This document shows positions 1 through 61,660 of a stretch of 64,000 nt of DNA, piece by piece. Made by a program: the position numbers and the translations under genes. Numbering within the stretch: position 1 is the stretch's first letter; each line of letters begins with the position of its first letter. The DNA comes from Macrostomum hystrix. Lineage: Eukaryota > Animalia > Platyhelminthes. Under the pieces are notes generated by a model, which did not search any database, had not been told where the DNA came from, and worked only from the letters and a program-made list of their open reading frames with translations. Location of the stretch: NCBI GenBank assembly GCA_950097015.1, contig CATNEN010000034.1, positions 6,386,001 to 6,450,000 on the forward strand, in the 5' to 3' direction.

Positions 1-391
1 AATAGGGGTCTATAAACTGGAATTCAAGAATATGGATCATTTATAATATTATGCGCCAATTCAAATTAAATTAATTTAACACAGCAAACTAGGAGATTGT
101 TAGTTTTACAATTGCGACTCGCTGTCCAATTTGGACTTACTATTGGCGAAGAGTATATTTTAAGTCAACCATATGTTTCAAAAAGATTTCGGTTGACTTT
201 CAGGGTGGATGCTGTCTCCTGTAAAAGGACTGGCTACTCAAACGCTTAACCGAGAGAAGGCCTAAATCATGTTTGCCTTTATTTTGTACTTATGGCAAAT
301 TCATATGCACTGTGACTAGGCGTCTTCGACACAGTCGGTACAACACAGGCTGCTCAGTAACGCTTGCCATGCATTTAGTTCTACTGCCATT

Positions 392-1279
392 TTAGTAGTA
401 GCCTCTCTTGCTAGCGGAGTCTTTGTAGTTCCACATGCCAGGCCAGTAGTAGCCTCTCTTGCTAGCGGAGTCTTTGTAGTTCCATATGCCAGGCCAGTAG
501 TAGCCTCTCTTGCTAGCGGAGTGTTTGAAGTTCCACATGCCACGCCAGTAGTAGCCTCTCTTGCTAGCGGAGTGTTTGTAGTTCCACATGCCAGGCCAAT
601 AGTAGCTTCTCTTGCTAGCGGAGTCTTTGTAGTTCCACATTCCAGGCCAGTTGTAGCCTCTCTTGTCAGCTTTGTAGTTCCACATGCCAGGCCAGTAGTA
701 GCCTCTCTTGCTAGCGGAGTGTTCGAAGTTCCACATGCCAGGCCAATAGTAGCCCCTCTTGCCAGCGGAGTCTTTGTAGTTCCATATGCCAGGCCAGTAG
801 TAGCCTCTCTTGCTAGCGGAGTCTTTGTAGTTCCACATGCCAGGCCAGTAGTAGCCTCTCTTGCTAGCGGAGTGTTTGAAGTTCCACATTCCAGGCCAGT
901 AGTAGCCTCTCTTGTCAGCTTTGTAGTTCCACATGCCAGGCCAGTAGTAGCCTCTCTTGCTAGCGGAGTGTTCGAAGTTCCACGTGCCAGGCCAGTAGTA
1001 GCCTCTCTTGCTAGCGGAGTCTTTGTAGTTCCACATGCCAGGCCAATAGTAGCCTCTCTTGCTAGCGGAGTGTTTGTAGTTCCACATGCCAGGCCAATAG
1101 TAGCCTCTCTTGTCAGTACTAAAAGTCTCTTCATTGCCATCTACATGTTCCACTGCAGCTAAGATCAGCAAAGTTGAGAAGAGAGCCAAGCAATGCGGTA
1201 AGCTGGAACGGATGTTGGCTGAGATAAAGTTTTGAAATGAGGTTGCCTTTGCACAACTGCGCTCGAAATCGATTGCCAT
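392..1279 (-). CDS. Secreted multi-copy peptide precursor (prohormone/neuropeptide-like): 14 KR-flanked peptides, consensus GYYWPGMWNYK(D/H)SAS
   Basis: The 295-aa ORF has a hydrophobic signal-like segment (SLPHCLALFSTLLILAAVEHVDG), an acidic spacer (NEETFSTD), then 14 complete peptides each bounded by the dibasic convertase site KR, ending GYY-stop (TAA at 394-392). An in-phase acceptor (tttatctcag, exon from 1218) may mean the true start lies in an upstream exon. Confidence 0.8.
   Translation of the reverse strand: MAIDFERSCAKATSFQNFISANIRSSLPHCLALFSTLLILAAVEHVDGNEETFSTDKRGYYWPGMWNYKHSASKRGYYWPGMWNYKDSASKRGYYWPGTWNFEHSASKRGYYWPGMWNYKADKRGYYWPGMWNFKHSASKRGYYWPGMWNYKDSASKRGYYWPGIWNYKDSAGKRGYYWPGMWNFEHSASKRGYYWPGMWNYKADKRGYNWPGMWNYKDSASKRSYYWPGMWNYKHSASKRGYYWRGMWNFKHSASKRGYYWPGIWNYKDSASKRGYYWPGMWNYKDSASKRGYY
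395..1105 (-). repeat. Coding tandem repeat, 51-bp unit (45-bp variant in units 4 and 9)
   Basis: The repeat unit equals one peptide plus KR (17 codons). The two shorter ADKR units are 15 codons, so frame is preserved. Confidence 0.95.
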
Positions 1280-1912
1280 CCTAACTACGCTCGTGCTACC
1301 AGGTCGCTCATAAGAAACGATTCTGCCTATTAAACTTCTTAAAGAAATGGCAGTCCATTGCTTGACAGTTTGACGCGGTCGATAGAATTATTGATTGCCT
1401 TCGCTGATGGGGTCCCGACTCTACATATAGTGTTCCTGAATACAGCAGTCTCCACCTAAGGTTCACCTGGGGTATCACCTTTCCCTGAAAACACAGCTGT
1501 CAGTTTACACTGGGCCCTACCTGATAAGGACATTGCACAATGTTAAGTATGAAAAGTATGAAATGGTTAAGGTTACAAGAAACTTGCCTTCTCAGTCGCA
1601 GCATTTCCAATACTGAGCAGTTTGGAAAGACTGATCAGCTAGACTCGTCAAAGTTTATTGCTTCTTGTCGAACTGTTCGTAGACCGAATTTGAGCAGTCT
1701 CTTGAAACGACTTAAGCAGAATTTATACATATCATGGGAGGCATGTAGATGCGGCATCTTTCGGCTCCCGTATGCAGTCTCTGCCGTGAGACTCGCTAAA
1801 GGCTGCGGCCAATCAGAAATCGTCGTCATTGACAGTCTAATTGATTGGTGCGTGGATGGTCTCAGAGTGCTTCGAGTCGGAAATGGCTGCCTGCAAACCA
1901 GACACTAGATCT

Positions 1913-2082
1913 AAGTTCCCTGAGCTCGATTCCGCAGCGAGGCCACATTAATTTGGGGCCGCATGTACATAGCCTGTGTGAGTCTGTGCTCAGGAGTCAG
2001 CGGAAAGGGGCGGAATTGCCTCTCACTCGCTACGGGTCTGCTGTCATAGATTGATGTGCCAGTGCATACAGCCCTTCTACAA
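1913..2082 (+). mobile_element. Diverged, 5'-truncated and internally deleted copy of the tRNA-derived SINE
   Basis: It retains the B-box-like GCTCGATTCC, gccacatt(a)atttgggg and the 3' body (gaattgcctc...gtgccagtgc...cagccctt), matching the copy at 62679-63044. The central hairpin segment is missing. Confidence 0.7.
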
Positions 2083-4598
2083 TAGAGTTTCGAACCCACG
2101 ACCTATGAGTTGCGATGGTCTCAAGGTCTTGATTTTTCAAATCTTCAGAATTTCTGGCTGCTAAACAAGCGACAGAATAATTGCGTGCTCACTGGCTAGG
2201 CCAGCATTGTTAGGCATAGATGACATGATGCTGAAATTGAGCATCGCCTGTGCAAGCTGATTCCTAGTTAGACAGCTCTTACAACCCTTTGAGCAGTGGG
2301 CAGCGCATTATACTCGTACTATCGACAATATATTCTCTTTTTGTGCCCTACAAAGTTGTCACAATTATTATCCCATTAGGCTAAAAATGCAGCAAAGGTT
2401 TGCACACGTGCATCTAAACACAAGAGACAGAAAAAGTTGGAATGTTTTACAGTTTAAAGGGAGAAATTTAGTTTGAAGAATCTAGATTTATGATAAGATT
2501 CTGGATCGTAATTACGAGTACAAGTTAAGGAAGTCAATGACAAACATCTGACATGCCTGTCCGCTAGGATGTGCGATGCAGGGGGCAAATATTTCAAGGC
2601 GTCATGTTTTTGTGACACGTGCAATGTGTTAAAAACATGCCCTACCCCAAGTACCCACCCCAAGGGGACTTAACTCCTCGATATGTGAATTGTACACAAT
2701 TTAGAATCTTGTCTAAAACATGTCTTCAGCATCAACAATAATCTCTTGGGCGGATGGATATAGGCTAATCAACTACAATAGGCTAACCACCTACAACAGG
2801 CTAACCACCTACAACAGGCTAATCACCTACAACAGGCTAATCAACTACAAAAGGCTAACCACCAACAACAGGCTAATCACCTACAACAGGCTAACCACCT
2901 ACAACAGGCTAATCAACTACAATAGGCTAACCACCTACAACAGGCTAACCACCTACAACAGGCTAACCACCTACAACAGGCTAATCACCTACAACAGGCT
3001 AATCAACTACAAAAGGCTAACCACCAACAACAGGCTAATCAACTACAATAGGCTAACCACCTACAACAGGCTAATCAACTACAATAGGCTAACCACCTAC
3101 AACAGGCTAACCACCTACAACAGGCTAATCAACTACAACAGGCTAACCACCTACAACAGGCTAATCAACTACAACAGGCTAACCACCTACAACAGGCTAA
3201 TCAACTACAATAGGCTAACCACCTACAACAGGCTAACCACCTACAACAGGCTAATCAACTACAACAGGCTAACCACCTACAACAGGCTAATCAACTACAA
3301 TAGGCTAACCACCTACAACAGGCTAATCAACTACAATAGGCTAACCACCTACAACAGGCTAACCACCTACAACAGGCTAATCAACTACAATAGGCTAACC
3401 ACCTACAACAGGCTAATCAACTACAATAGGCTAACCACCTACAACAGGCTAATCAACTACAATAGGCTAACCACCTACAACAGGCTAACCACCTACAACA
3501 GGCTAATCAACTACAATAGGCTAACCACCTACAACAGGCTAATCAACTACAATAGGCTAACCACCTACAACAGGCTAACCACCTACAACAGGCTAATCAA
3601 CTACAATAGGCTAACCACCTACAACAGGCTAATCAACTACAATAGGCTAACCACCTACAACAGGCTAACCACCTACAACAGGCTAATCAACTACAATAGG
3701 CTAACCACCTACAACAGGCTAATCACCTACAACAGGCTAACCACCTACAACAGGCTAATCAACTACAATAGGCTAACCACCTACAACAGGCTAACCACCT
3801 ACAACAGGCTAATCAACTACAATAGGCTAACCACCTACAACAGGCTAACCACCTACAACAGGCTAATCAACTACAATAGGCTAACCACCTACAACAGGCT
3901 AATCACCTACAACAGGCTAATCACCTACAACAGGCTAGTCACCTACAACAGTCTAATCACCTACAACAGGCTAACCACCTACAACAGGCTAATCACCTAC
4001 AACAGGCTAATCACCTACAACAGGCTAACCACCTACAACAGGCTAACCACCTACAACAGGCTAATCAACTACAATAGGCTAACCACCTACAACAGGCTAA
4101 TCACCTACAACAGGCTAATCACCTACAACAGGCTAATCACCTACAACAGGCTAGTCACCTACAACAGGCTAACCACCTACAACAGGCTAATCACCTACAA
4201 CAGGCTAATCACCTACAACAGGCTAACCACCTACAACAGGCTAACCACCTACAACAGGCTAATCACCTACAACAGGCTAACCACCTACAACAGGCTAATC
4301 ACCTACAACAGGCTAATCACCTACAACAGGCTAACCACCTACAACAGGCTAACCACCTACAACAGGCTAATCACCTACAACAGGCTAACCACCTACAACA
4401 GGCTAACCACCTACAACAGGCTAATCACCTACAACAGGCTAATCACCTACAACAGGCTAACCACCTACAACAGGCTAATCAACTACAACAGGCTAACCAC
4501 CTACAACAGGCTAACCACCTACAACAGGCTAATCACCTACAACAGGCTAATCACCTACAACAGGCTAACCACCTACAACAGGCTAATCAACTACAATA

Positions 4599-4934
4599 GG
4601 GGGGTCGGTGGCAGAGCGGTTAACACGTTTGCCTCTCGGACCACGGTCCTTATGTTCGATTCCACGGCGAGGCCACATTTATTTGGGGGCTTGTCGTGCA
4701 ATTTACGCCCTTAAGGGCCAACCTCCAAGGCACAGTGAAATGTACACTGCCTGACGATGAGAAAGTCAGGGCAGATGTACACACCTGTGTGAGTGTATGC
4801 CTGCGTACAGTATCTGTGTGCGTGTGTGCTCTGGACTCAGCCAAATGGGCAGAATTGCCTCCTCGCTGGCTGGGGGTCTAGTGTCACCAAATGTTGTGCC
4901 ATTGCCCGCAGCCCTCCTGCAATTATTAAATATT
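4599..4934 (+). mobile_element. tRNA-derived SINE, full length (336 bp), copy 1 inside the minisatellite
   Basis: It has a Pol III A-box TGGCAGAGCGG, a B-box GTTCGATTCC, a unique body and an AATTATT tail. It matches 6242-6577, 7491-7826 and 62679-63044. Confidence 0.9.
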
Positions 4935-6241
4935 CACCTACAACAGGCTAACCACCTACAACAGGCTAACCACCTACAACAGGCTAATCAACTACAATAG
5001 GCTAACCACCTACAACAGGCTAATCACCTACAACAGGCTAATCACCTACAACAGGCTAATCACCTACAACAGGCTAGTCACCTACAACAGGCTAACCACC
5101 TACAACAGGCTAATCACCTACAACAGGCTAATCACCTACAACAGGCTAACCACCTACAACAGGCTAACCACCTACAACAGGCTAATCACCTACAACAGGC
5201 TAACCACCTACAACAGGCTAATCACCTACAACAGGCTAACCACCTACAACAGGCTAACCACCTACAACAGGCTAACCACCTACAACAGGCTAATCACCTA
5301 CAACAGGCTAACCACCTACAACAGGCTAATCACCTACAACAGGCTAATCACCTACAACAGGCTAACCACCTACAACAGGCTAATCAACTACAATAGGCTA
5401 ACCACCTACAACAGGCTAATCACCTACAACAGGCTAATCACCTACAACAGGCTAATCAACTACAATAGGCTAACCACCTACAACAGGCTAACCACCTACA
5501 ACAGGCTAATCAACTACAATAGGCTAACCACCTACAACAGGCTAATCACCTACAACAGGCTAATCACCTACAACAGGCTAGTCACCTACAACAGTCTAAT
5601 CACCTACAACAGGCTAACCACCTACAACAGGCTAATCACCTACAACAGGCTAATCACCTACAACAGGCTAACCACCTACAACAGGCTAACCACCTACAAC
5701 AGGCTAATCAACTACAATAGGCTAACCACCTACAACAGGCTAATCACCTACAACAGGCTAATCACCTACAACAGGCTAATCACCTACAACAGGCTAGTCA
5801 CCTACAACAGGCTAACCACCTACAACAGGCTAATCACCTACAACAGGCTAATCACCTACAACAGGCTAACCACCTACAACAGGCTAACCACCTACAACAG
5901 GCTAATCACCTACAACAGGCTAACCACCTACAACAGGCTAATCACCTACAACAGGCTAATCACCTACAACAGGCTAACCACCTACAACAGGCTAACCACC
6001 TACAACAGGCTAATCACCTACAACAGGCTAACCACCTACAACAGGCTAACCACCTACAACAGGCTAATCACCTACAACAGGCTAATCACCTACAACAGGC
6101 TAACCACCTACAACAGGCTAATCAACTACAACAGGCTAACCACCTACAACAGGCTAACCACCTACAACAGGCTAATCACCTACAACAGGCTAATCACCTA
6201 CAACAGGCTAACCACCTACAACAGGCTAATCAACTACAATA

Positions 6242-6577
6242 GGGGGGTCGGTGGCAGAGCGGTTAACACGTTTGCCTCTCGGACCACGGTCCTTATGTTC
6301 GATTCCACGGCGAGGCCACATTTATTTGGGGGCTTGTCGTGCAATTTACGCCCTTAAGGGCCAACCTCCAAGGCACAGTGAAATGTACACTGCCTGACGA
6401 TGAGAAAGTCAGGGCAGATGTACACACCTGTGTGAGTGTATGCCTGCGTACAGTATCTGTGTGCGTGTGTGCTCTGGACTCAGCCAAATGGGCAGAATTG
6501 CCTCCTCGCTGGCTGGGGGTCTAGTGTCACCAAATGTTGTGCCATTGCCCGCAGCCCTCCTGCAATTATTAAATATT
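6242..6577 (+). mobile_element. tRNA-derived SINE, copy 2 inside the minisatellite
   Basis: It appears identical to 4599-4934, with the same junctions (caactacaatag| ... |cacctacaa). Confidence 0.9.
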
Positions 6578-7490
6578 CACCTACAACAGGCTAACCACCT
6601 ACAACAGGCTAACCACCTACAACAGGCTAATCAACTACAATAGGCTAACCACCTACAACAGGCTAATCACCTACAACAGGCTAATCACCTACAACAGGCT
6701 AATCACCTACAACAGGCTAGTCACCTACAACAGGCTAACCACCTACAACAGGCTAATCACCTACAACAGGCTAATCACCTACAACAGGCTAACCACCTAC
6801 AACAGGCTAACCACCTACAACAGGCTAATCACCTACAACAGGCTAACCACCTACAACAGGCTAATCACCTACAACAGGCTAATCACCTACAACAGGCTAA
6901 CCACCTACAACAGGCTAATCACCTACAACAGGCTAATCACCTACAACAGGCTAATCCACCTACAACAGGCTAATCACCTACAACAGGCTAATCACCTACA
7001 ACAGGCTAACCACCTACAACAGGCTAACCACCTACAACAGTCTAATCACCTACAACAGGCTAACCACCTACAACAGGCTAATCACCTACAACAGGCTAAT
7101 CACCTACAACAGGCTAACCACCTACAACAGGCTAACCACCTACAACAGGCTAATCACCTACAACAGGCTAACCACCTACAACAGGCTAATCACCTACAAC
7201 AGGCTAATCACCTACAACAGGCTAACCACCTACAACAGGCTAACCACCTACAACAGGCTAATCACCTACAACAGGCTAATCCACCTACAACAGGCTAACC
7301 ACCTACAACAGGCTAATCACCTACAACAGGCTAATCACCTACAACAGGCTAACCACCTACAACAGGCTAGTCACCTACAACAGGCTAATCACCTACAACA
7401 GGCTAATCACCTACAACAGGCTAATCACCTACAACAGGCTAATCACCTACAACAGGCTAACCACCTACAACAGGCTAATCAACTACAATA

Positions 7491-7826
7491 GGGGGGTCGG
7501 TGGCAGAGCGGTTAACACGTTTGCCTCTCGGACCACGGTCCTTATGTTCGATTCCACGGCGAGGCCACATTTATTTGGGGGCTTGTCGTGCAATTTACGC
7601 CCTTAAGGGCCAACCTCCAAGGCACAGTGAAATGTACACTGCCTGACGATGAGAAAGTCAGGGCAGATGTACACACCTGTGTGAGTGTATGCCTGCGTAC
7701 AGTATCTGTGTGCGTGTGTGCTCTGGACTCAGCCAAATGGGCAGAATTGCCTCCTCGCTGGCTGGGGGTCTAGTGTCACCAAATGTTGTGCCACTGCCCG
7801 CAGCCCTCCTGCAATTATTAAATATT
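7491..7826 (+). mobile_element. tRNA-derived SINE, copy 3 inside the minisatellite
   Basis: Same element and junctions. The one difference noticed is ccaCtgcccg versus ccaTtgcccg. Confidence 0.9.
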
Positions 7827-13027: not shown

Positions 13028-15262
13028 ACTCACACACACACTCACACACACTCACACACACACTCACACACTCACACACACTCACACACTCACACACACT
13101 CACACACTCACACACACTCACACACTCACACACACTCACACACTCACACACACTCACACACTCACACACTCACACACTCACACACACTCACACACACACT
13201 CACACACACTCACACACACACACACACTTACACACACTCACACACTCACACACTCACACACACGCACACACTTACACACTCACACACACGCACACACTTA
13301 CACACACACTCACACACACACACACTCACACACTCACACACACACGCACGCACACTCACACACACACTCACACACACACTCACACACACACTCACACACA
13401 CGCACGCACACTCACACACACACTCACACACACGCACGCACACAGGCACTTTTCATGCGACGTGTAAAGAACTTTTCCCCTCAAGCAGTTCGACTCATCC
13501 TCTCACAACTGCTTGGGAATTCTGTCTGTCTTTCCCAGCAGGCGCGGGCAGCTTCTTCCACAACCACCCCCTCCTCCGCTGTTCCCATTAGTATGCCGGG
13601 GACGCTTCAGACTCGATCGCCAGAGGGCCGGGCGGCCATTGGGACGGAGCGCTGCGTCTACTTTCAACGCCTTGGGGGAGAGGATGAAGGCAGCGAATAG
13701 TAGAGAAAGTGAGGTGAGATCAGACAGCGGGGGAGAGGTTCGAATTCATTTTTGTGTCAATCGCGTCCCGAGAAATTGCATCAATTCGTTGATGCAAGTC
13801 GAGAGCAAGATCGTGATTTGATCAGCACCAACTAATCATTCCCTTTAGGCGCGAATGGAATTTTTCTTTATTTTTTTTCCAAGGGAAATCACGAAGGAGC
13901 TTCTTTTATGTGTGGGCTCCTGCCGAATTTTTTTATCTCTGCCGGATTGCGCGAAATTCAATTCAAAAGCGCAATTATGTAGGAGTTAAATATTCGGCAC
14001 TTTTGAGGAGAAAAATTGATTTATTGATTTGTATTCATTCCTTTTGAACACATTAACCAGCCACCTCATTCGATTTTTCTCCTAACCCTGTGTACGCTTG
14101 AGCCCCTCCTCGCGCTATTCACCCACCACCTCATTATCGATTTTTTCCTACCCTGTGTACGCATGAGCCCCTCCGCGTGCTATTCACCCACCACCTCATT
14201 ATAGATTTTTTCCTACCTCTGTGTACGCATGAGCCCCTCCGCGTGCTATTCACCCACCACCTCATTATCGATTTTTTCCTACCTCTGTGTACGCATGAGC
14301 CCCTCCACGTGCTATTCACCCACCACCTCATTATAGATTTTTTCTGCTACCCCTGTGCACGCGTAAGCTGCTCCGAGTACTTTTCATCCATAAGCTCATT
14401 ATCAATTTTTCATCGATGTGACTGATTTATTGATCGCTTACCCCTGCCTGGCGAAGTCCTCCTTGAAGAACAGCCGCCAGAGCTCCCTGGTGCGCACATC
14501 AGATTTGAATAGCTTAGAACCCTCGCCGCGGTCGTTGACACTGTCGTCGTGATTGAGCACTCGACCAAGGACGGCCGCGGTGTCCTTCTCATATAGCAGC
14601 GGGTGCAGCATGTGCGAGTGCCATATGAGGTCCATGTCGTAGCAGGGCACCAGAAATTCGCCAGGGTTGCATTTCTTCAGGAATAGATACTTCTTGTAGC
14701 GAACCAGGGCGCACTTGAGAAACTCGGCATCTCTGTAGTGCGGCAGCGACACCTGATAGAAGAAGGCCCTCTGCCGACCGATGGAGCTGCGAATGTCGAA
14801 TCGACAGGCCGAACGAAACTCCAAGGGCTGTCGGCTGGCCCACTCCAGGTCCAGCTCGAAGTTCACTCCCGGATAGGCCTTGTCCCACAGCTCGCGAGTC
14901 TGAGCCACCAGCTTGGCTGTCATCTTCTCTGCGTGCAGCGTGTTGTCAATGAAGCGACCAGTCAGCCGTACAACATCCTCCTTGTAGGCCAGCGGAGACA
15001 GCAGGTGGCAGTGCAGGGCCCACCTGATATCCAGAGGCGGCACCAGGTCCTTGCCTGGCTCCTTCTGCACTAACGGCAGCCAGTACTTCTCGTATCGATA
15101 GACAGCGTGATCGGCTACGGTCGAGTCAAACAACAACGGCCTGGCGTTGACCGCCTCCAGAAACTCCAGCTGGCGCAAGGCGGCCTCAACTAGATTGACG
15201 CTGACGTGAATGCTGCGCTCCTTGAACTGCTGCGGCTGCTGACTGCTGCCCGGCTTTGACAT
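9208..15262 (-). CDS. DUF1399 / glycine-rich domain-containing protein (GRDP-like), 4 exons, about 826 aa, with a C-terminal Gly-Cys repeat tail
   Basis: Exons are complement(15262-14442, 11302-10504, 10299-9883, 9651-9208), all GT-AG, phases 2/0/0, total 2481 nt (827 codons). DUF1399 motifs: [56 protein letters not shown]. The protein ends SGSCGG...(GGC)n. Confidence 0.9.
9749..9869 (+). mobile_element. 5' fragment of the tRNA-derived SINE in intron 3 of the DUF1399 gene (antisense to the gene)
   Basis: gagtggcagagccgtaaacgcgtttgcc...gctcgattccgcggcgaggccacatttatttgggg...gggccaacctacaaggcacagtg aligns to the SINE head. Confidence 0.8.
10326..10485. repeat. 30-bp minisatellite filling intron 2 of the DUF1399 gene
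   Basis: About 5 copies of TCTAACATTTGAACATGAAATTTAG(G/T)TGTG. Confidence 0.9.
12953..13443. repeat. (CA)n/(CACT)n compound microsatellite
   Basis: Direct inspection. It lies in intron 1 of the DUF1399 gene. Confidence 0.97.
14061..14350. repeat. 65-66-bp tandem repeat, about 4.5 copies
   Basis: ccacctcatt recurs at 14061, 14126, 14191, 14257 and 14323. Confidence 0.9.
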
Positions 15263-15495
15263 GTTCCTGCTTGAAGTGCGCAATAACCTTCCTTTGATAT
15301 GGGTCAGCTTTGAAAACAATTTTCAGAGATTAAATGACTGGTTGCTAAGGTTGGTGTGACTAAGCAGTCTTATATATGCGTCTATTTATAGCCACAACAA
15401 TAACTGCACACTCACTGTCCTCGGTCAAAGCTGTTTCACTGTTTGGGTCTAGTGTGTGTCAGACGTGAGGTGGGGGCCTAGTGGACACCCCATCC

Positions 15496-15826
15496 TGATC
15501 CCATCTCCCCTCTGATCCCATCTCACCTCTGATCCCATCTACTTCTCCCCTCTGATCCCATCTACTTCTCCCCTCTGATCCCATCTACTTCTCCCCTCTG
15601 ATCCCATCTACTTCTCCCCTCTGATCCCATCAAATTCTCCCCTCTGATCCCATCAAATTCTCCCCTCTGATCCCGTCTACTTCTCCCCTCTGATCCCATC
15701 TCACCTCTGATCCCATCTGCTTCTCTCCTCTGATCCCATCTGCTTCTCTCCTCTGATCCCATCTGCTTCTCTCCTCTGATCACATCTACTTCTCCCCTCT
15801 GATCCCATCTACTTCTCCCCTCTGAT
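15496..15826 (+). repeat. 23-bp minisatellite GATCCCATCTACTTCTCCCCTCT (left arm of an inverted array pair)
   Basis: It is the reverse complement of the 16708-19238 array unit. Confidence 0.95.
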
Positions 15827-16707
15827 AGCCGTACCCTGCTGCTCCACAGGGTAAACAGCAAAAAATATTATAATTGCGTTAAATTACTTTAAAAAAATTA
15901 AAAAAAATTGTTCAACTCCACTCACCTCTATTTGAACAAAATCCACCGAATTCGGGCGAAAAACTCAATGGAAAACTTCTCAGAGACTTTCTAAATCGAG
16001 CAGCTTTCTCAGCTGTCAGCACTGGCCCCTCTCTCTAGCGGCCTCATAGTTTATAATACAAAAAACGAAGTGCATGCAGCCGTCATGCAGGGTAAGACCG
16101 GATTCGGGGCCGAGGAATTGAGGGTAGAGAGAAAGGGCGAAACTCTGTACACTCACACTGTACATATTTCGATGCTGAAATCAACAACCCCAACGGCTGT
16201 ACACCCACCCCCAGTGCAAACACTGCCTTCCCCCCTCCTATCCCGTCCCCAGAAGCTGTATTAGTACCTCGTCAGAGACTAAAGGGAAGAGAGTGTCTGC
16301 CTTCCGGTTGGAGATTGAGGCAGGGATTGGGTGGGACAGGGCGCTGGGCAGGCTCCTCCACTGTTATATGGGGAAGAACGAGAGGGGGTTCGCAAGAGAG
16401 GCCAGCAACCAAACGCGGTCTATTTCCCTTAGCAACGATCCTCAATTCCCCATTGACGGTCTTTGCTCTGCCCACAATGCCAGAGAGTAAGGGTTGGGGT
16501 GGATGACAAATGGGAAGCGAGTTGGAAGCGGGGGCGGAGGGACTCCGAGCTGAAATCGTCCGCTGCCAGCAGTTCAGTTCGCCTCTCAATCAGTCATGTG
16601 TACGCTGGTAGGCCCCATGTTTCCTCTAAACTAGCATCAATTGGGGGTTCGGGCATAGGCAAGAGTGCAAATTGAGGTCGAGGGATGGAATATGACCTGG
16701 TTGCTAA

Positions 16708-19238
16708 GTAGATGGGATCAGAGGAGAGAAGCAGATGGGATCAGAGGAGAGAAGCAGATGGGATCAGAGGAGAGAAGCAGATGGGATCAGAGGAGAGAAG
16801 CAGATGTGATCAGAGGAGAGAAGCAGATGGGATCAGAGGAGAGAAGTAGATGGGATCAGAGGAGAGAAGTAGATGGGATCAGAGGAGAGAAGTAGATGGA
16901 ATCAGAGAGGAGAAGTAGATGGGATCAGAGGGGAGAAGTAGATGGGATCAGAGAGGAGAAGTAGATGGGATCAGAGGGGAGAAGCAGATGGGATCAGAGG
17001 AGAGAAGCAGATGGGATCAGAGGAGAGAAGCAGATGGGATCAGAGGAGAGAAGCAGATGGGATCAGAGGAGAGAAGCAGATGGGATCAGAGGAGAGAAGC
17101 AGATGGGATCAGAGGAGAGAAGTAGATGGGATCAGAGGAGAGAAGTAGATGGGATCAGAGGAGAGAAGTAGATGGAATCAGAGAGGAGAAGTAGATGGGA
17201 TCAGAGGGGAGAAGTAGATGGGATCAGAGAGGAGAAGTAGATGGGATCAGAGGGGAGAAGTAGATGGGATCAGAGAGGAGAAGTAGATGGGATCAGAGGG
17301 GAGAAGTTAATGGGATCAGAGCGGAGAAGTAGATGGGATCAGAGAGGAGAAGTAGATGGGATCAGAGAGGAGAAGTAGATGTGATCAGAGAGGAGAAGTA
17401 GATGGGATCAGAGGGGAGAAGTAGATGTGATCAGAGAGGAGAAGTAGAGGGGATCAGAGGGGAGAAGTAGATGGGATCAGAGAGGAGAAGTAGATGGGAT
17501 CAGAGGGGAGAAGTAGATGGGATCAGAGGGGAGAAGTTGACGGGATCAGAGGGGAGAAGTAGATGGGATCAGAGGCGAGAAGTAGATGGGATCAGAGGGG
17601 AGAAGTAGATGGGATCAGAGAGGAGAAGTAGATGGGATCAGAGGGGAGAAGAAGATGGGATCAGAGAGGAGAATTTGATGGGATCAGAGGGGAGAAGTAG
17701 ATGGGATCAGAGAGGAGAAGTAGATGGGATCAGAGGAGAGAAGTAGATGGGATCAGAGGAGAGAAGTAGATGGGATCAGAGGGGAGAAGTAGATGGGATC
17801 AGAGGGGAGAAGTAGATGGGATCAGAGTGGAGAAGTAGATGGGATCAGAGGGGAGAAGTAGATGGGATCAGAGGGGAGAAGTAGATGGGATCAGAGAGGA
17901 GAAGTAGATGGGATCAGAGAGGAGAAGTAGATGGGATCAGAGGGGAGAAGTAGATGGGATCAGAGGGGAGAAGTAGATGGGATCAGAGGGGAGAAGTAGA
18001 TGGGATCAGAGGGGAGAAGTAGATGGGATCAGAGGGGAGAAGTAGATGGGATCAGAGGGAGAAGTAGATGGGATCAGAGCGGAGAAGTAGATGGGATCAG
18101 AGGGGAGAAGTAGATGGGATCAGAGAGGAGAAGTAGATGGGATCAGAGGGGAGAAGTAGATGGGATCAGAGGGAGAAGTAGATGGGATCAGAGAGGAGAA
18201 GTAGATGGGATCAGAGGAGAGAAGTAGATGGGATCAGAGGAGAGAAGTAGATGGGATCAGAGGGGAGAAGTAGATGGGATCAGAGGGGAGAAGTAGATGG
18301 GATCAGAGGGGAGAAGTAGATGGGATCAGAGGGGAGAAGTAGATGGGATCAGAGGGGAGAAGTAGATGGGATCAGAGAGGAGAAGTAGATGGGATCAGAG
18401 AGGAGAAGTAGATGGGATCAGAGAGGAGAAGTAGATGGGATCAGAGGGGAGAAGTAGATGGGATCAGAGGGGAGAAGTAGATGGGATCAGAGGGAGAAGT
18501 AGATGGGATCAGAGGGGAGAAGTAGATGGGATCAGAGGGGAGAAGTTGATGGGATCAGAGCGGAGAAGTAGATGGGATCAGAGGCGAGAAGTAGATGGGA
18601 TCAGAGGGGAGAAGTAGATGGGATCAGAGAGGAGAAGTAGATGGGATCAGAGGGGAGAAGTAGATGGGATCAGAGGGGAGAAGTAGATGGGATCAGAGGG
18701 GAGAAGTAGATGGGATCAGAGCGGAGAAGTAGATGGGATCAGACGGGAGAAGTAGATGGGATCAGAGTGGAGAAGTAGATGGGATCAGAGGGGAGAAGTA
18801 GATGGGATCAGAGGGGAGAAGTTGATGGGATCAGAGCGGAGAAGTAGATGGGATCAGAGGCGAGAAGTAGATGGGATCAGAGGGGAGAAGTAGATGGGAT
18901 CAGAGAGGAGAAGTAGATGTGATCAGAGAGGAGAAGTAGATGTGATCAGAGGGGAGAAGTAGATGGGATCAGAGAGGAGAAGTAGATGGGATCAGAGGAG
19001 AGAAGTAGATGGGATCAGAGGGGAGAAGTAGATGGGATCAGAGAGGAGAAGTAGATGGGATCAGAGGGGAGAAGTAGATGGGATCAGAGCGGAGAAGTAG
19101 ATGGGATCAGAGGAGAGAAGTAGATGGGATCAGAGGAGAGAAGTAGATGTGACCAGAGGAGAGAGGCAGATGGGATCAGAGAGGAGAAGTAGATGGGATC
19201 AGAGGGGAGAAGTAGATGGGATCAGAGGGGAGAAGTAG
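16708..19238 (-). repeat. 23-bp minisatellite GATGGGATCAGAGGGGAGAAGTA (right arm, about 110 copies)
   Basis: Direct inspection. It is inverted relative to 15496-15826. Confidence 0.97.
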
Positions 19239-28675: not shown

Positions 28676-32757
<4,082 letters not shown>

Positions 32758-42716: not shown

Positions 42717-54599
<11,883 letters not shown>

Positions 54600-60073: not shown

Positions 60074-61660
60074 CAACAACAACAAGAGACGCTAGCCCCA
60101 GAAGTCAGGGAGGCAGCGTCAGATGGCGCGCCGCAGAGCCAGCACGCGAGCATGATCCGCACCGGTGGCAGTGTCGGGCACCCCGGCGTCGCTCAGCACG
60201 CAGTCGACGTAGCGGCGGGTCCAAGCCTGGCCGCGGCTGAACGGGCCCTGCAGAGTGAGCAGCGGGACGTCCTGGGCGGGCTGGCGGCAGTAGCTCTCGG
60301 CCCGAATAACGTGGCCCGCTAGTCGAAGTCGCGGCTGGCGCAGGATAGTGGACGGGCGTTGCAGCTGGGCTCTCTCGTACAGAGCCTCGGTCCCGACGCT
60401 CTCGTCAGCTTGAAAGGCCGCACGGAGCAGTCCTGAGTGCGCCGAGTCCAGCTGCCGCTCCAGCGTAGCCGTCAGCGTCCACGACTCGGCGTTGTACAGC
60501 AGGACGGTCTCGACCACCGCCTGCCACAGCCGAGCCCTCTGGCGGTCAGGCAGCGCTGTGGACTGGAGGACGGCCCGGATCGAACGGTAGGCCGCCCATG
60601 CGAGTCCTCTGCGCCGCCGGATGTCGTCTTCCACGTTGGGCACCAGACCGCCGAGGTAAGTGAAGCGCTGGCAGCGTGCGAGCGAGATGATCTGCCCGTC
60701 TGCGCCGCGGCACGTCAGGTCCGCTGGAATGTCGGCCAACACGGTCAGCACCTCGGTCTTAAGCGAGTTGATCAATAGGCCGACGCTTGATGCCACCTCA
60801 GCCAACCTGTCAATCTGGCGCTGGGCACCTTCGACAGTCGAGGACAGGAGGGCGAGGTCGTCGGCGTAGCCAAGCACGCTGAGGCGCTTCTCATCGTTGC
60901 GGCGACCGATGGGTCTGTGCAGCGGGAAGCCGTCTTCAGCCGAGGGGAGCGCAGTCCGAAGCACCCAGTCCAGGAGAAGCACGAAGAGGAACGGGGCCAG
61001 CGTGTCGCCCTGCACCACTCCTGACGAGGTGGCAAACAGGTCGGACAGGCCGTCCGCCGTAACAACAGCAGCGCGCGTGTCGCGATACAGCGACATGACA
61101 GCGGCGACTAGCTGCTCTGGGACCCGGTAGGCACGAAGGACGAGTGGGAGCGCGGCTCTTGACACCGAGTCAAACGCCTTGCGGAAGTCGACAAACACGA
61201 CGATCAGTGTTGACTGGCGGATGCGTGCCTCCTCGATGACACGGCGGAGTGCGAGGATCTGGGTCACTGTACCGCGCTGCGGCCGGAACCCGTTCTGCTC
61301 GTAACGGAGGTACGGGTCCAGCACCGACTGCAGGCGATCGAGAAGCAGTCGGTTGAAAAGCTTCGCGGTGCAAGACATAAGCGAGATCCCGCGGTGATCT
61401 TCTTTCCGCGTTGTCCCAGCCTTCTTCGGGATCGGCACGATGAGCGCTACGGTCCACTCGGTGGGCGCAGGGCGCCGGCGAGCACGCGGTTCATGGCGCC
61501 TGTGACTTGGTAAGCCACACAGCGGAGCCGCAGCGCCTCGACTGGAACCTCGTCGGGGCCGAGCGCATTGCCGCCAGATGTTATCCGAGCGAACCGCACA
61601 GCATCCTCCACGGTGACTGGGCTGGTGCGAAAATCTGGCAGGGCCGTGTCCGTCGGCAGC
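60074..61660 (-). mobile_element. 5'-truncated non-LTR retrotransposon (RTE-like LINE) with an intact RT-domain ORF at 60119-61438
   Basis: RT motifs: IPKK..HRGISL, QNGFR, FVDFRKAFDSV, GVVQGDTLAPFLF, LGYADDL, FTYLG. A short 3' UTR ends in a (TTG)n tail. The 10-bp TSD TTATGAACAA is at 60064-60073 and 61661-61670. The element is a GC-rich island in AT-rich DNA. Confidence 0.9.

Follow-up and report, generated by a model that had tools for sequence, protein, structure and literature searches.

A spliced gene of the flatworm Macrostomum hystrix encodes a predicted prohormone-type precursor with 14 copies of a WPGMW-core peptide

Does an array of Trp/Tyr-rich peptides read from a minisatellite in a flatworm genome belong to a gene, and, if it does, what kind of product would that gene make? 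The question is raised by an open frame of 295 aa on the minus strand (392..1279, from a program-made list of open reading frames) of the window, by which we mean the whole stretch of 64,000 nucleotides of Macrostomum hystrix DNA that was analysed. Tandem Repeats Finder resolved 394-1112 into a 51-bp unit repeated 14.3 times (89% matches), with a higher-order unit of 249 bp in the same array. Translation and repeat finding on the minus strand gave, at 404..1105, 14 units that each consist of GYYWPGMWN[Y/F], a tail and KR; splitting the translation at KR yielded 15 such sites, which bound the 14 full units, just as an earlier note made from the letters alone had described (14 KR-flanked peptides of 13-15 residues on this strand). 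Without the KR, 12 of the units are 15 residues long and end in a five-residue tail (KDSAS, KHSAS or EHSAS, and once KDSAG), and the remaining two are 13 residues long and end in KAD, so that every tail listed in that note was found in the translation. At the DNA level the units measure 51 nt (12/14) or 45 nt (2/14), both of which keep the frame, and the 14 copies comprise 11 distinct peptide sequences. The two Trp residues of each array peptide, W4 and W8, are separated by three residues and followed by 5-7 more, and position 11 is Lys except in 2/14 copies, which have Glu. A unit-by-unit reading upheld the observation that 13 of the 14 copies have no amidation-type Gly before KR, the one exception being KDSAG-KR. 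The array closes with a decayed last unit in which GYY is followed by the stop codon TAA (392..403, minus strand).

The openness of the peptide frame is not evidence for a gene, because the array has further open frames and the window is rich in minisatellites. Two further frames of the 394-1112 array, 316..1140 (-) and 521..1162 (+), are open, making three of six in all, and more than 25 other minisatellite arrays fill much of the length of the 64-kb window. One of these, an 18-bp minisatellite of 260 copies at 2762-7492, produces a meaningless ORF of 664 codons (2720-4714, plus strand), and this is a good internal control: long ORFs on repeats are uninformative here. Within the array itself, variable sites fall on codon positions 1, 2 and 3 in the ratio 5/3/4, indicating that the copies carry no coding signature and, compared with one another, no sign of purifying selection. 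They form a young, homogenised array, and are too young for a codon-position analysis inside it to be informative. The three open frames, the dozens of minisatellites (one of them with a 664-aa ORF) and the absence of a third-position excess among the substitutions are all in keeping with a chance opening of the frame in a non-coding minisatellite, a reading to which we nevertheless give almost no credence; what raises the peptide frame above chance is a splice, a signal peptide and conservation across species.

Eleven public runs contained the stretch, and four of them were compared with window positions 1-2700. In the DNA run X1, coverage was even (~67x over 1-2700) and collinear with the window, and its contig 6 spans 1083-1942. 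Runs X3 and X4 gave partial coverage, with zero depth at 1261-1530, 1801-1890 and 2071-2700. Contig record 15 of X3 (253 nt) joins 1083-1202 directly to 1588-1720 and so skips 385 nt; further X3 contigs lie on 92-423 (contig 9) and on repeats. A contig of run X9 (contig 25; 151 nt), a run with another organism label and guessed to be RNA, lies on 216-363 with two differences. From the exon-only coverage and the canonical junction we infer that X3, whose record gives no kind, is an RNA run. On the minus strand the skipped 385 nt begin with the donor AAG/GCAAGT and end with the acceptor TTCCAG/C, a consensus GC-AG pair, and because these splice sites are canonical on the minus strand and non-canonical on the plus strand, the transcript lies on the minus strand. 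The minus-strand transcript on which the earlier note had made its proposal depend was thus found, in spliced form and with GC..AG sites that are canonical on this strand only, and it is confirmed that 392-1279 belongs to a real, spliced minus-strand gene.

The gene extends at least over 92-1720 and has two exons. Exon 1, delimited by the extent of the X3 contig (1588..1720, minus strand), comprises 116 nt of 5' UTR and 17 nt of coding sequence; it holds a single ATG, at 1604-1602, and 1588-1604 translates to MLRLR with two nucleotides left over. The phase-2, GC-AG intron of 385 nt (1203..1587, minus strand), skipped in X3 and collinear in X1, contains the ATG at 1279, so that this codon and the next 26 codons are intronic. 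Base 1202 completes a Ser codon (AG/C) that spans the exon junction, and the coding part of exon 2 (392..1202, minus strand) runs from LPHCLALF... to KRGYY and the stop codon at 392-394. The 3' UTR (92..391, minus strand), followed as far as the RNA-type contigs extend (X3 contig 9 and X9 contig 25), includes an AATAAA at 278-283, and the X3 contig continues past this hexamer (283-278) to 92. Upstream, a possible promoter element, TATAAAT (1721..1727, minus strand), adjoins the end of the RNA contig; a similar TATAAAT occurs ~100 nt upstream of the ATG in a relative from Macrostomum lignano that is described below.

The splice has a direct consequence for the N terminus. Behind the basic MLRLR, inspection of the translation places the hydrophobic core of a signal peptide, S-LPHCLALFSTLLILAAV, at 1151..1202 (minus strand), followed at 1106..1150 by an acidic propeptide of 13 residues, EHVDGNEETFSTD, which reaches up to the first KR. 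The spliced reading is MLRLR-S-LPHCLALFSTLLILAAV-EHVDGNEETFSTD-KR-GYYW..., all in the peptide frame, and this order, in which a basic head precedes 17 hydrophobic core residues and the acidic propeptide, is, judged by reading, a textbook predicted signal peptide. The hydrophobic segment and acidic spacer noticed earlier are therefore both real features of the gene, but the start assumed for the open frame, the ATG at 1279, is not: it is intronic, and the true start is the ATG at 1604-1602. A frame left open by chance in a non-coding minisatellite is hard to reconcile with a splice that joins a start codon and a signal peptide to exactly the peptide frame, or with X3 coverage that is confined to exons.

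Relatives were sought with the exons separately, in a word-indexed search and an exhaustive phmmer search of 1.84 billion (1.84e9) representative proteins. The word-indexed search matched one protein, P0001 (UniProt A0A1I8HFB1, M. lignano), a fragment with a signal peptide of its own, an NEDKR stretch and at least four full 16-aa units of the form KR-GYYWPGMWNFRNAD; its name, 'Salivary secreted protein', is automatic and has no evidence behind it. Its layout is tandem as in the window gene, from which it differs in its 16-residue units with their RNAD tail and in the signal peptide. The phmmer search returned 45 matches among the 1.84e9 representatives, of which only three, P0001, P0012 and P0025, contain WPGxW. 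The other 42 were set aside as compositional (bacterial FPIFW-type repeat proteins and translated satellites, none with WPGxW), and P0045, which has a 17-residue period and no KR, was treated as spurious because it comes from a metagenome contig of bacterial type that contains a 51-bp repeat. P0025 is an M. lignano hypothetical protein (PAA81773.1, BOX15_Mlig013514g1) that occurs three times in the M. lignano genome, and P0012 is part of a 926-nt contig from run SRR30276804 (L004), the full frame of which is a complete precursor. A word search with P0025 found no further relatives, another that used 100 residues of the window protein so as to pick up short fragments matched P0025 only, and an exact look-up of P0001 and the window ORF matched no contig. 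As far as the databases show, the family appears to be restricted to Macrostomum.

The two short relatives proved the more informative. P0025 has three cores (ASYWPGMWQF, GYYWPGMWNF and AYYWPGMWRY) and L004/P0012 has four (ASYWPGMWHF, GYFWPGMWHF, GYFWPGMWQY and ATFWPGMWRH); both have a signal peptide, and in both every core stands right after RR or KR, among unrelated acidic spacers of unequal length. Aligning the window gene with these M. lignano and L004 sequences gave a family core of x-[Y/S/T]-[Y/F]-WPGMW-x-[F/Y/H] directly after KR or RR. Codons in the core and the dibasic sites have changed synonymously (Pro CCT/CCG/CCC; Arg of KR AGA/CGA/CGC/CGG; Ser AGC/TCC; Ala GCC/GCT/GCG), and across the family the tails vary freely in sequence and in length (3, 4, 5 or 6 residues) and the spacers differ, while the core stays constant. 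This pattern shows that the core and KR are kept in the relatives by selection on the peptide. It also bears on the earlier concern that orthologues might not conserve the KR sites: the dibasic pair is kept before the core, with its Arg codons changed.

Gene structure is likewise shared. The first coding exon of the P0025 gene is exactly 17 nt long (ATG...GGAAA/gtaagc), as in the window gene, and is followed by a phase-2 intron of ~545 nt; the position and phase of the intron are identical in the two genes, the comparison having been made for P0025. In M. lignano this intron is filled with a short tandem repeat of GTTGCTATGC-type units (L001:4180-4540), so that introns and flanks rich in repeats go with the gene family in both species. 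With the core kept in three other genes, synonymous changes within it and a common intron position, the chance-frame reading is refuted, barring an assembly artefact in the X3 contig and relatives that are not expressed.

Unlike the window gene, which has 14 copies and no such tail, P0025 has three copies, long acidic spacers and a C-terminal loop peptide, YWLGKAC-x8-C. This C-terminal tail is conserved between P0025 and L004 (YWLGKACGETGD..ACS.LNG), with two Cys eight residues apart (L001:4001-5042, NIVC01000471.1; L004:147-650), and in L004 it is preceded by 'ERY'. From its sequence, this tail probably forms a second product of the short relatives, with a disulphide loop. Loose ends at 878-913 in runs X3, X4 and X9 reveal a further transcript type, in which the KRGYYWPGMWNF core is followed, on the minus strand, by DKESSG-KR-SY...; in X3 these 36 nt, together with 18 other letters, repeat as a 54-nt unit at a depth of ~296. 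We interpret the DKESSG-tailed transcript as the product of a paralogous tandem gene elsewhere in the genome, and its tail ends in an amidation-type Gly. The family, a small one, thus comprises a plain form, with 3-4 copies and a Cys-loop tail peptide, and at least two tandemly amplified forms, the window gene being on the tandemly expanded branch.

To what known peptides might this family belong? The earlier note had recognised no described family, and the searches bear this out: no Pfam profile reached its gathering score with the window protein or with P0001, P0012 or P0025, a PDB sequence search with P0025 gave no match, and the full text of 8.4 million papers, with the flatworm surveys of McVeigh et al. 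(2009) and Koziol et al. (2016) standing outside the comparison, yielded no relevant paper for the core motif, its sub-words, the M. lignano locus names or the Cys-tail motif. Wamide/MIP peptides (allatostatin-B, prothoracicostatic peptide) and the annelid non-amidated WI peptides (PMC3890597) are also multi-copy, two-Trp peptides, but the Trp spacing is 3 here versus 6-7 there, the second Trp is internal instead of C-terminal, 13 of 14 copies have no amidation Gly and no profile matched; the note's exclusion of Wamide/MIP, made on the Trp spacing and the missing amidation Gly, holds. Similar in layout and from the same phylum are spp-15 and npp-26, the planarian and schistosome FDPIxF-type precursors (PMC2953531), which likewise combine a signal peptide with many short non-amidated copies between basic sites and an aromatic residue at or near the end; they have no sequence similarity to the window gene, which has a 10-residue N-terminal core, two Trp and a variable tail. 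For the short relatives, whitnin of molluscs and annelids (SPTR/PKYMDT/ERYM; PMC3434067) would offer a faint parallel in its small upstream peptides and looped C-terminal peptide after 'ERY'. Compared by description only, the Haliotis loop is C-x12-C and amidated, in contrast to C-x8-C and unamidated here, and the upstream peptides are unrelated, so that the whitnin likeness of the tail would be a weak, faint lead. The achatin-type peptides and the nematode Gly/Tyr-rich NLP/caenacin peptides share with the array an N-terminal Gly-aromatic-aromatic sequence after KR and multi-copy precursors rich in G, Y and W, but differ from it in length, sequence and charge, and no homology was detected. Achatin-type peptides are G-aromatic-x-D tetrapeptides with a D-residue at position 2. 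For the window protein and for P0025, every language-model neighbour is a multi-copy neuropeptide precursor (score <=0.86), the named ones being prothoracicostatic peptide (top, 0.86), tachykinin, allatostatin, FLP, PBAN and TRH, a neighbourhood that may serve as a lead only. Taken at the level of sequence, the peptide family appears to be new within a well-known kind of gene, with no new mechanism involved.

The features found are those of the precursor class: a predicted signal peptide, dibasic-flanked repeats, and a peptide and cleavage sites that are conserved while the spacers diverge. We therefore favour, as probable but well short of certain, a two-exon minus-strand gene for a secreted prohormone-type precursor in which function lies with the core, most likely as a neuropeptide or as another kind of secreted signalling peptide. 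Neural signalling would hold the larger share of this reading, at somewhat under an even chance on its own account, and signalling with the cell type left open the smaller and by itself unlikely remainder, the two jointly making up the probability given. On the analogy of prohormone biology, from which secretion, cleavage, mature form, cell type and function are all inferred, exon 1 would supply the start and basic head, and exon 2 the hydrophobic core, the 13-residue propeptide and the 14 copies; the signal peptide would be removed in the ER, a PC2/furin-type convertase of the secretory pathway would then cut behind every KR, and a carboxypeptidase would trim the KR, so that 13 of the 13-15-mers would end as free acids and one would be amidated. 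In M. lignano the nervous system expresses a PC2 homologue (PMC4490696), and non-amidated planarian peptides that end in an aromatic residue (spp-15, 1020HH) have been confirmed by mass spectrometry (PMC2953531). In the window peptides, nevertheless, it is the N terminus that is conserved, and the C terminus varies and lacks amidation; most neuropeptides are built the other way round, and this counts against a signalling role.

A further cut at position 11/12 might free the aromatic core as a peptide of 10-11 residues, with the tail acting as a mini-spacer, and it is this core that would act on a putative receptor. Position 11 or 12 is basic throughout the family: the window gene has K, P0001 has R and the paralogue has DK, and in the short precursors the core is followed by DR, NR, SR, RR or QQRR. 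In these short precursors an Arg comes within 0-4 residues of the core, with a long acidic spacer after it, and this gives indirect support to a second cut, which the earlier note had suggested as a source of the decapeptide GYYWPGMWNY. Monobasic cleavage sites usually have an upstream basic residue, and the basic residue at position 11 of the array peptides stands without one, which counts against the cut, as does the Glu found there in two copies. On balance, a second cut that releases the core of 10-11 residues is a tentative proposal, with a little less than an even chance of being right.

The Trp/Tyr-rich repeats could also be read as an uncleaved structural secretion, cross-linked or coacervated (eggshell, cement, adhesive or rhabdite), in which KR would provide charges or cross-link sites. 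The repeat part consists of 16.5% Tyr, 12% Gly, 12% Trp and 11% Lys, the array is tandem and lies in a satellite-rich region, and the short M. lignano relative, P0025, has GY-rich spacers and a poly-Tyr end, all of which would suit such a material. Tyr/Lys-rich tanned flatworm eggshell proteins and DOPA adhesives resemble the repeat part in composition. The predicted structure of P0025 is disordered (pLDDT 0.48), which would suit a structural protein and a processed precursor alike. We consider this reading quite improbable, given that the three to four cores of the short relatives stand exactly after RR or KR among unequal acidic spacers, which is the layout of a precursor, and that KR has been conserved through changes of the Arg codon.

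More credible, though still unlikely in our estimate, is a secreted peptide that is processed at KR in gland cells and not in neurons, for instance a pheromone, a defence peptide or a component of the seminal fluid or prostate secretion. The family is limited to one genus, and both the number of copies (3-4, at least 4 or 14) and the tails change rapidly, the kind of evolution typical of genes for reproduction and defence; the composition rich in Trp and Tyr points the same way. In planarians, the gut, adhesive glands and glands near the copulatory apparatus express prohormone genes too (PMC2953531), and for this reason a prohormone layout does not prove a neural product. M. lignano prostate cells, moreover, express many unannotated secreted products (PMC5977470), but the motif is absent from 27 kb of supplement text of that prostate screen (PMC5977470). 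Against a defence role, the 11 distinct array peptides (five aromatic residues in all but one) are near neutral, with net charges of -1 to +2, unlike cationic antimicrobial peptides, and the language-model neighbours, as a lead only, are neuropeptide precursors. The single-genus spread and the fast change in copy number would suit a reproductive or pheromonal peptide equally well.

Returning to the favoured signalling peptide, a bolder version of it would be a signalling system born within Macrostomum and acting through an orphan, flatworm-specific receptor. Its peptides would combine an aromatic N-terminal core that does not vary with a C terminus that is free and does, and might also undergo a second cut at 11/12 or carry a D-residue at position 2, as achatin-type peptides do; the increase from 3-4 to 14 copies would then be the outcome of recent selection for dose, perhaps in a reproductive or behavioural context. 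We regard this version as doubtful. Regeneration, ageing, adhesion and sexual conflict are all studied in Macrostomum as a laboratory model, yet its peptide signals have barely been catalogued, and the present family has no counterpart in the flatworm, annelid, mollusc and arthropod catalogues searched. Its plain (3-4 copy) and amplified (14-copy) forms would make a clean case of the birth and amplification of a young peptide gene within satellite-rich DNA. An orphan peptide in a model flatworm is also a concrete and testable object that offers cheap targets, namely synthetic peptides, peptidomics masses and probes for RNAi and in situ hybridisation.

Several other features were recorded in the window. 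A dispersed element at 1891-2070 reaches a depth of ~4x10^5 in X1, compared with ~67 in its flanks, and is present in X3, X4 and X9 as well; a tRNA-like GGTTCGAAAC box adjoins it at ~2086-2095 (minus strand), where ARAGORN calls no tRNA. The element is probably a SINE, situated ~200 nt upstream of exon 1. A single 23-bp unit (TCTCCCCTCTGATCCCATCTACT or its reverse complement) makes up both 15521-15826 and 16706-19238, which lie in opposite orientations with ~900 bp between them and form an inverted satellite pair. Remains of a retroelement, with a gag-type zinc knuckle and an integrase C-terminal/SH3 domain, occupy 49595-52546 on the plus strand (66% G+C), and a separate reverse-transcriptase ORF lies at 60119-61438 on the minus strand (RVT_1, E 7e-31). 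Two ORFs are probable host exons: a GRDP-like glycine-rich-domain ORF at 14438-15319 on the minus strand (PF07173, E 2e-44) and a leucine-rich-repeat ORF at 29717-30634 on the plus strand (LRR_8, E 6e-14).
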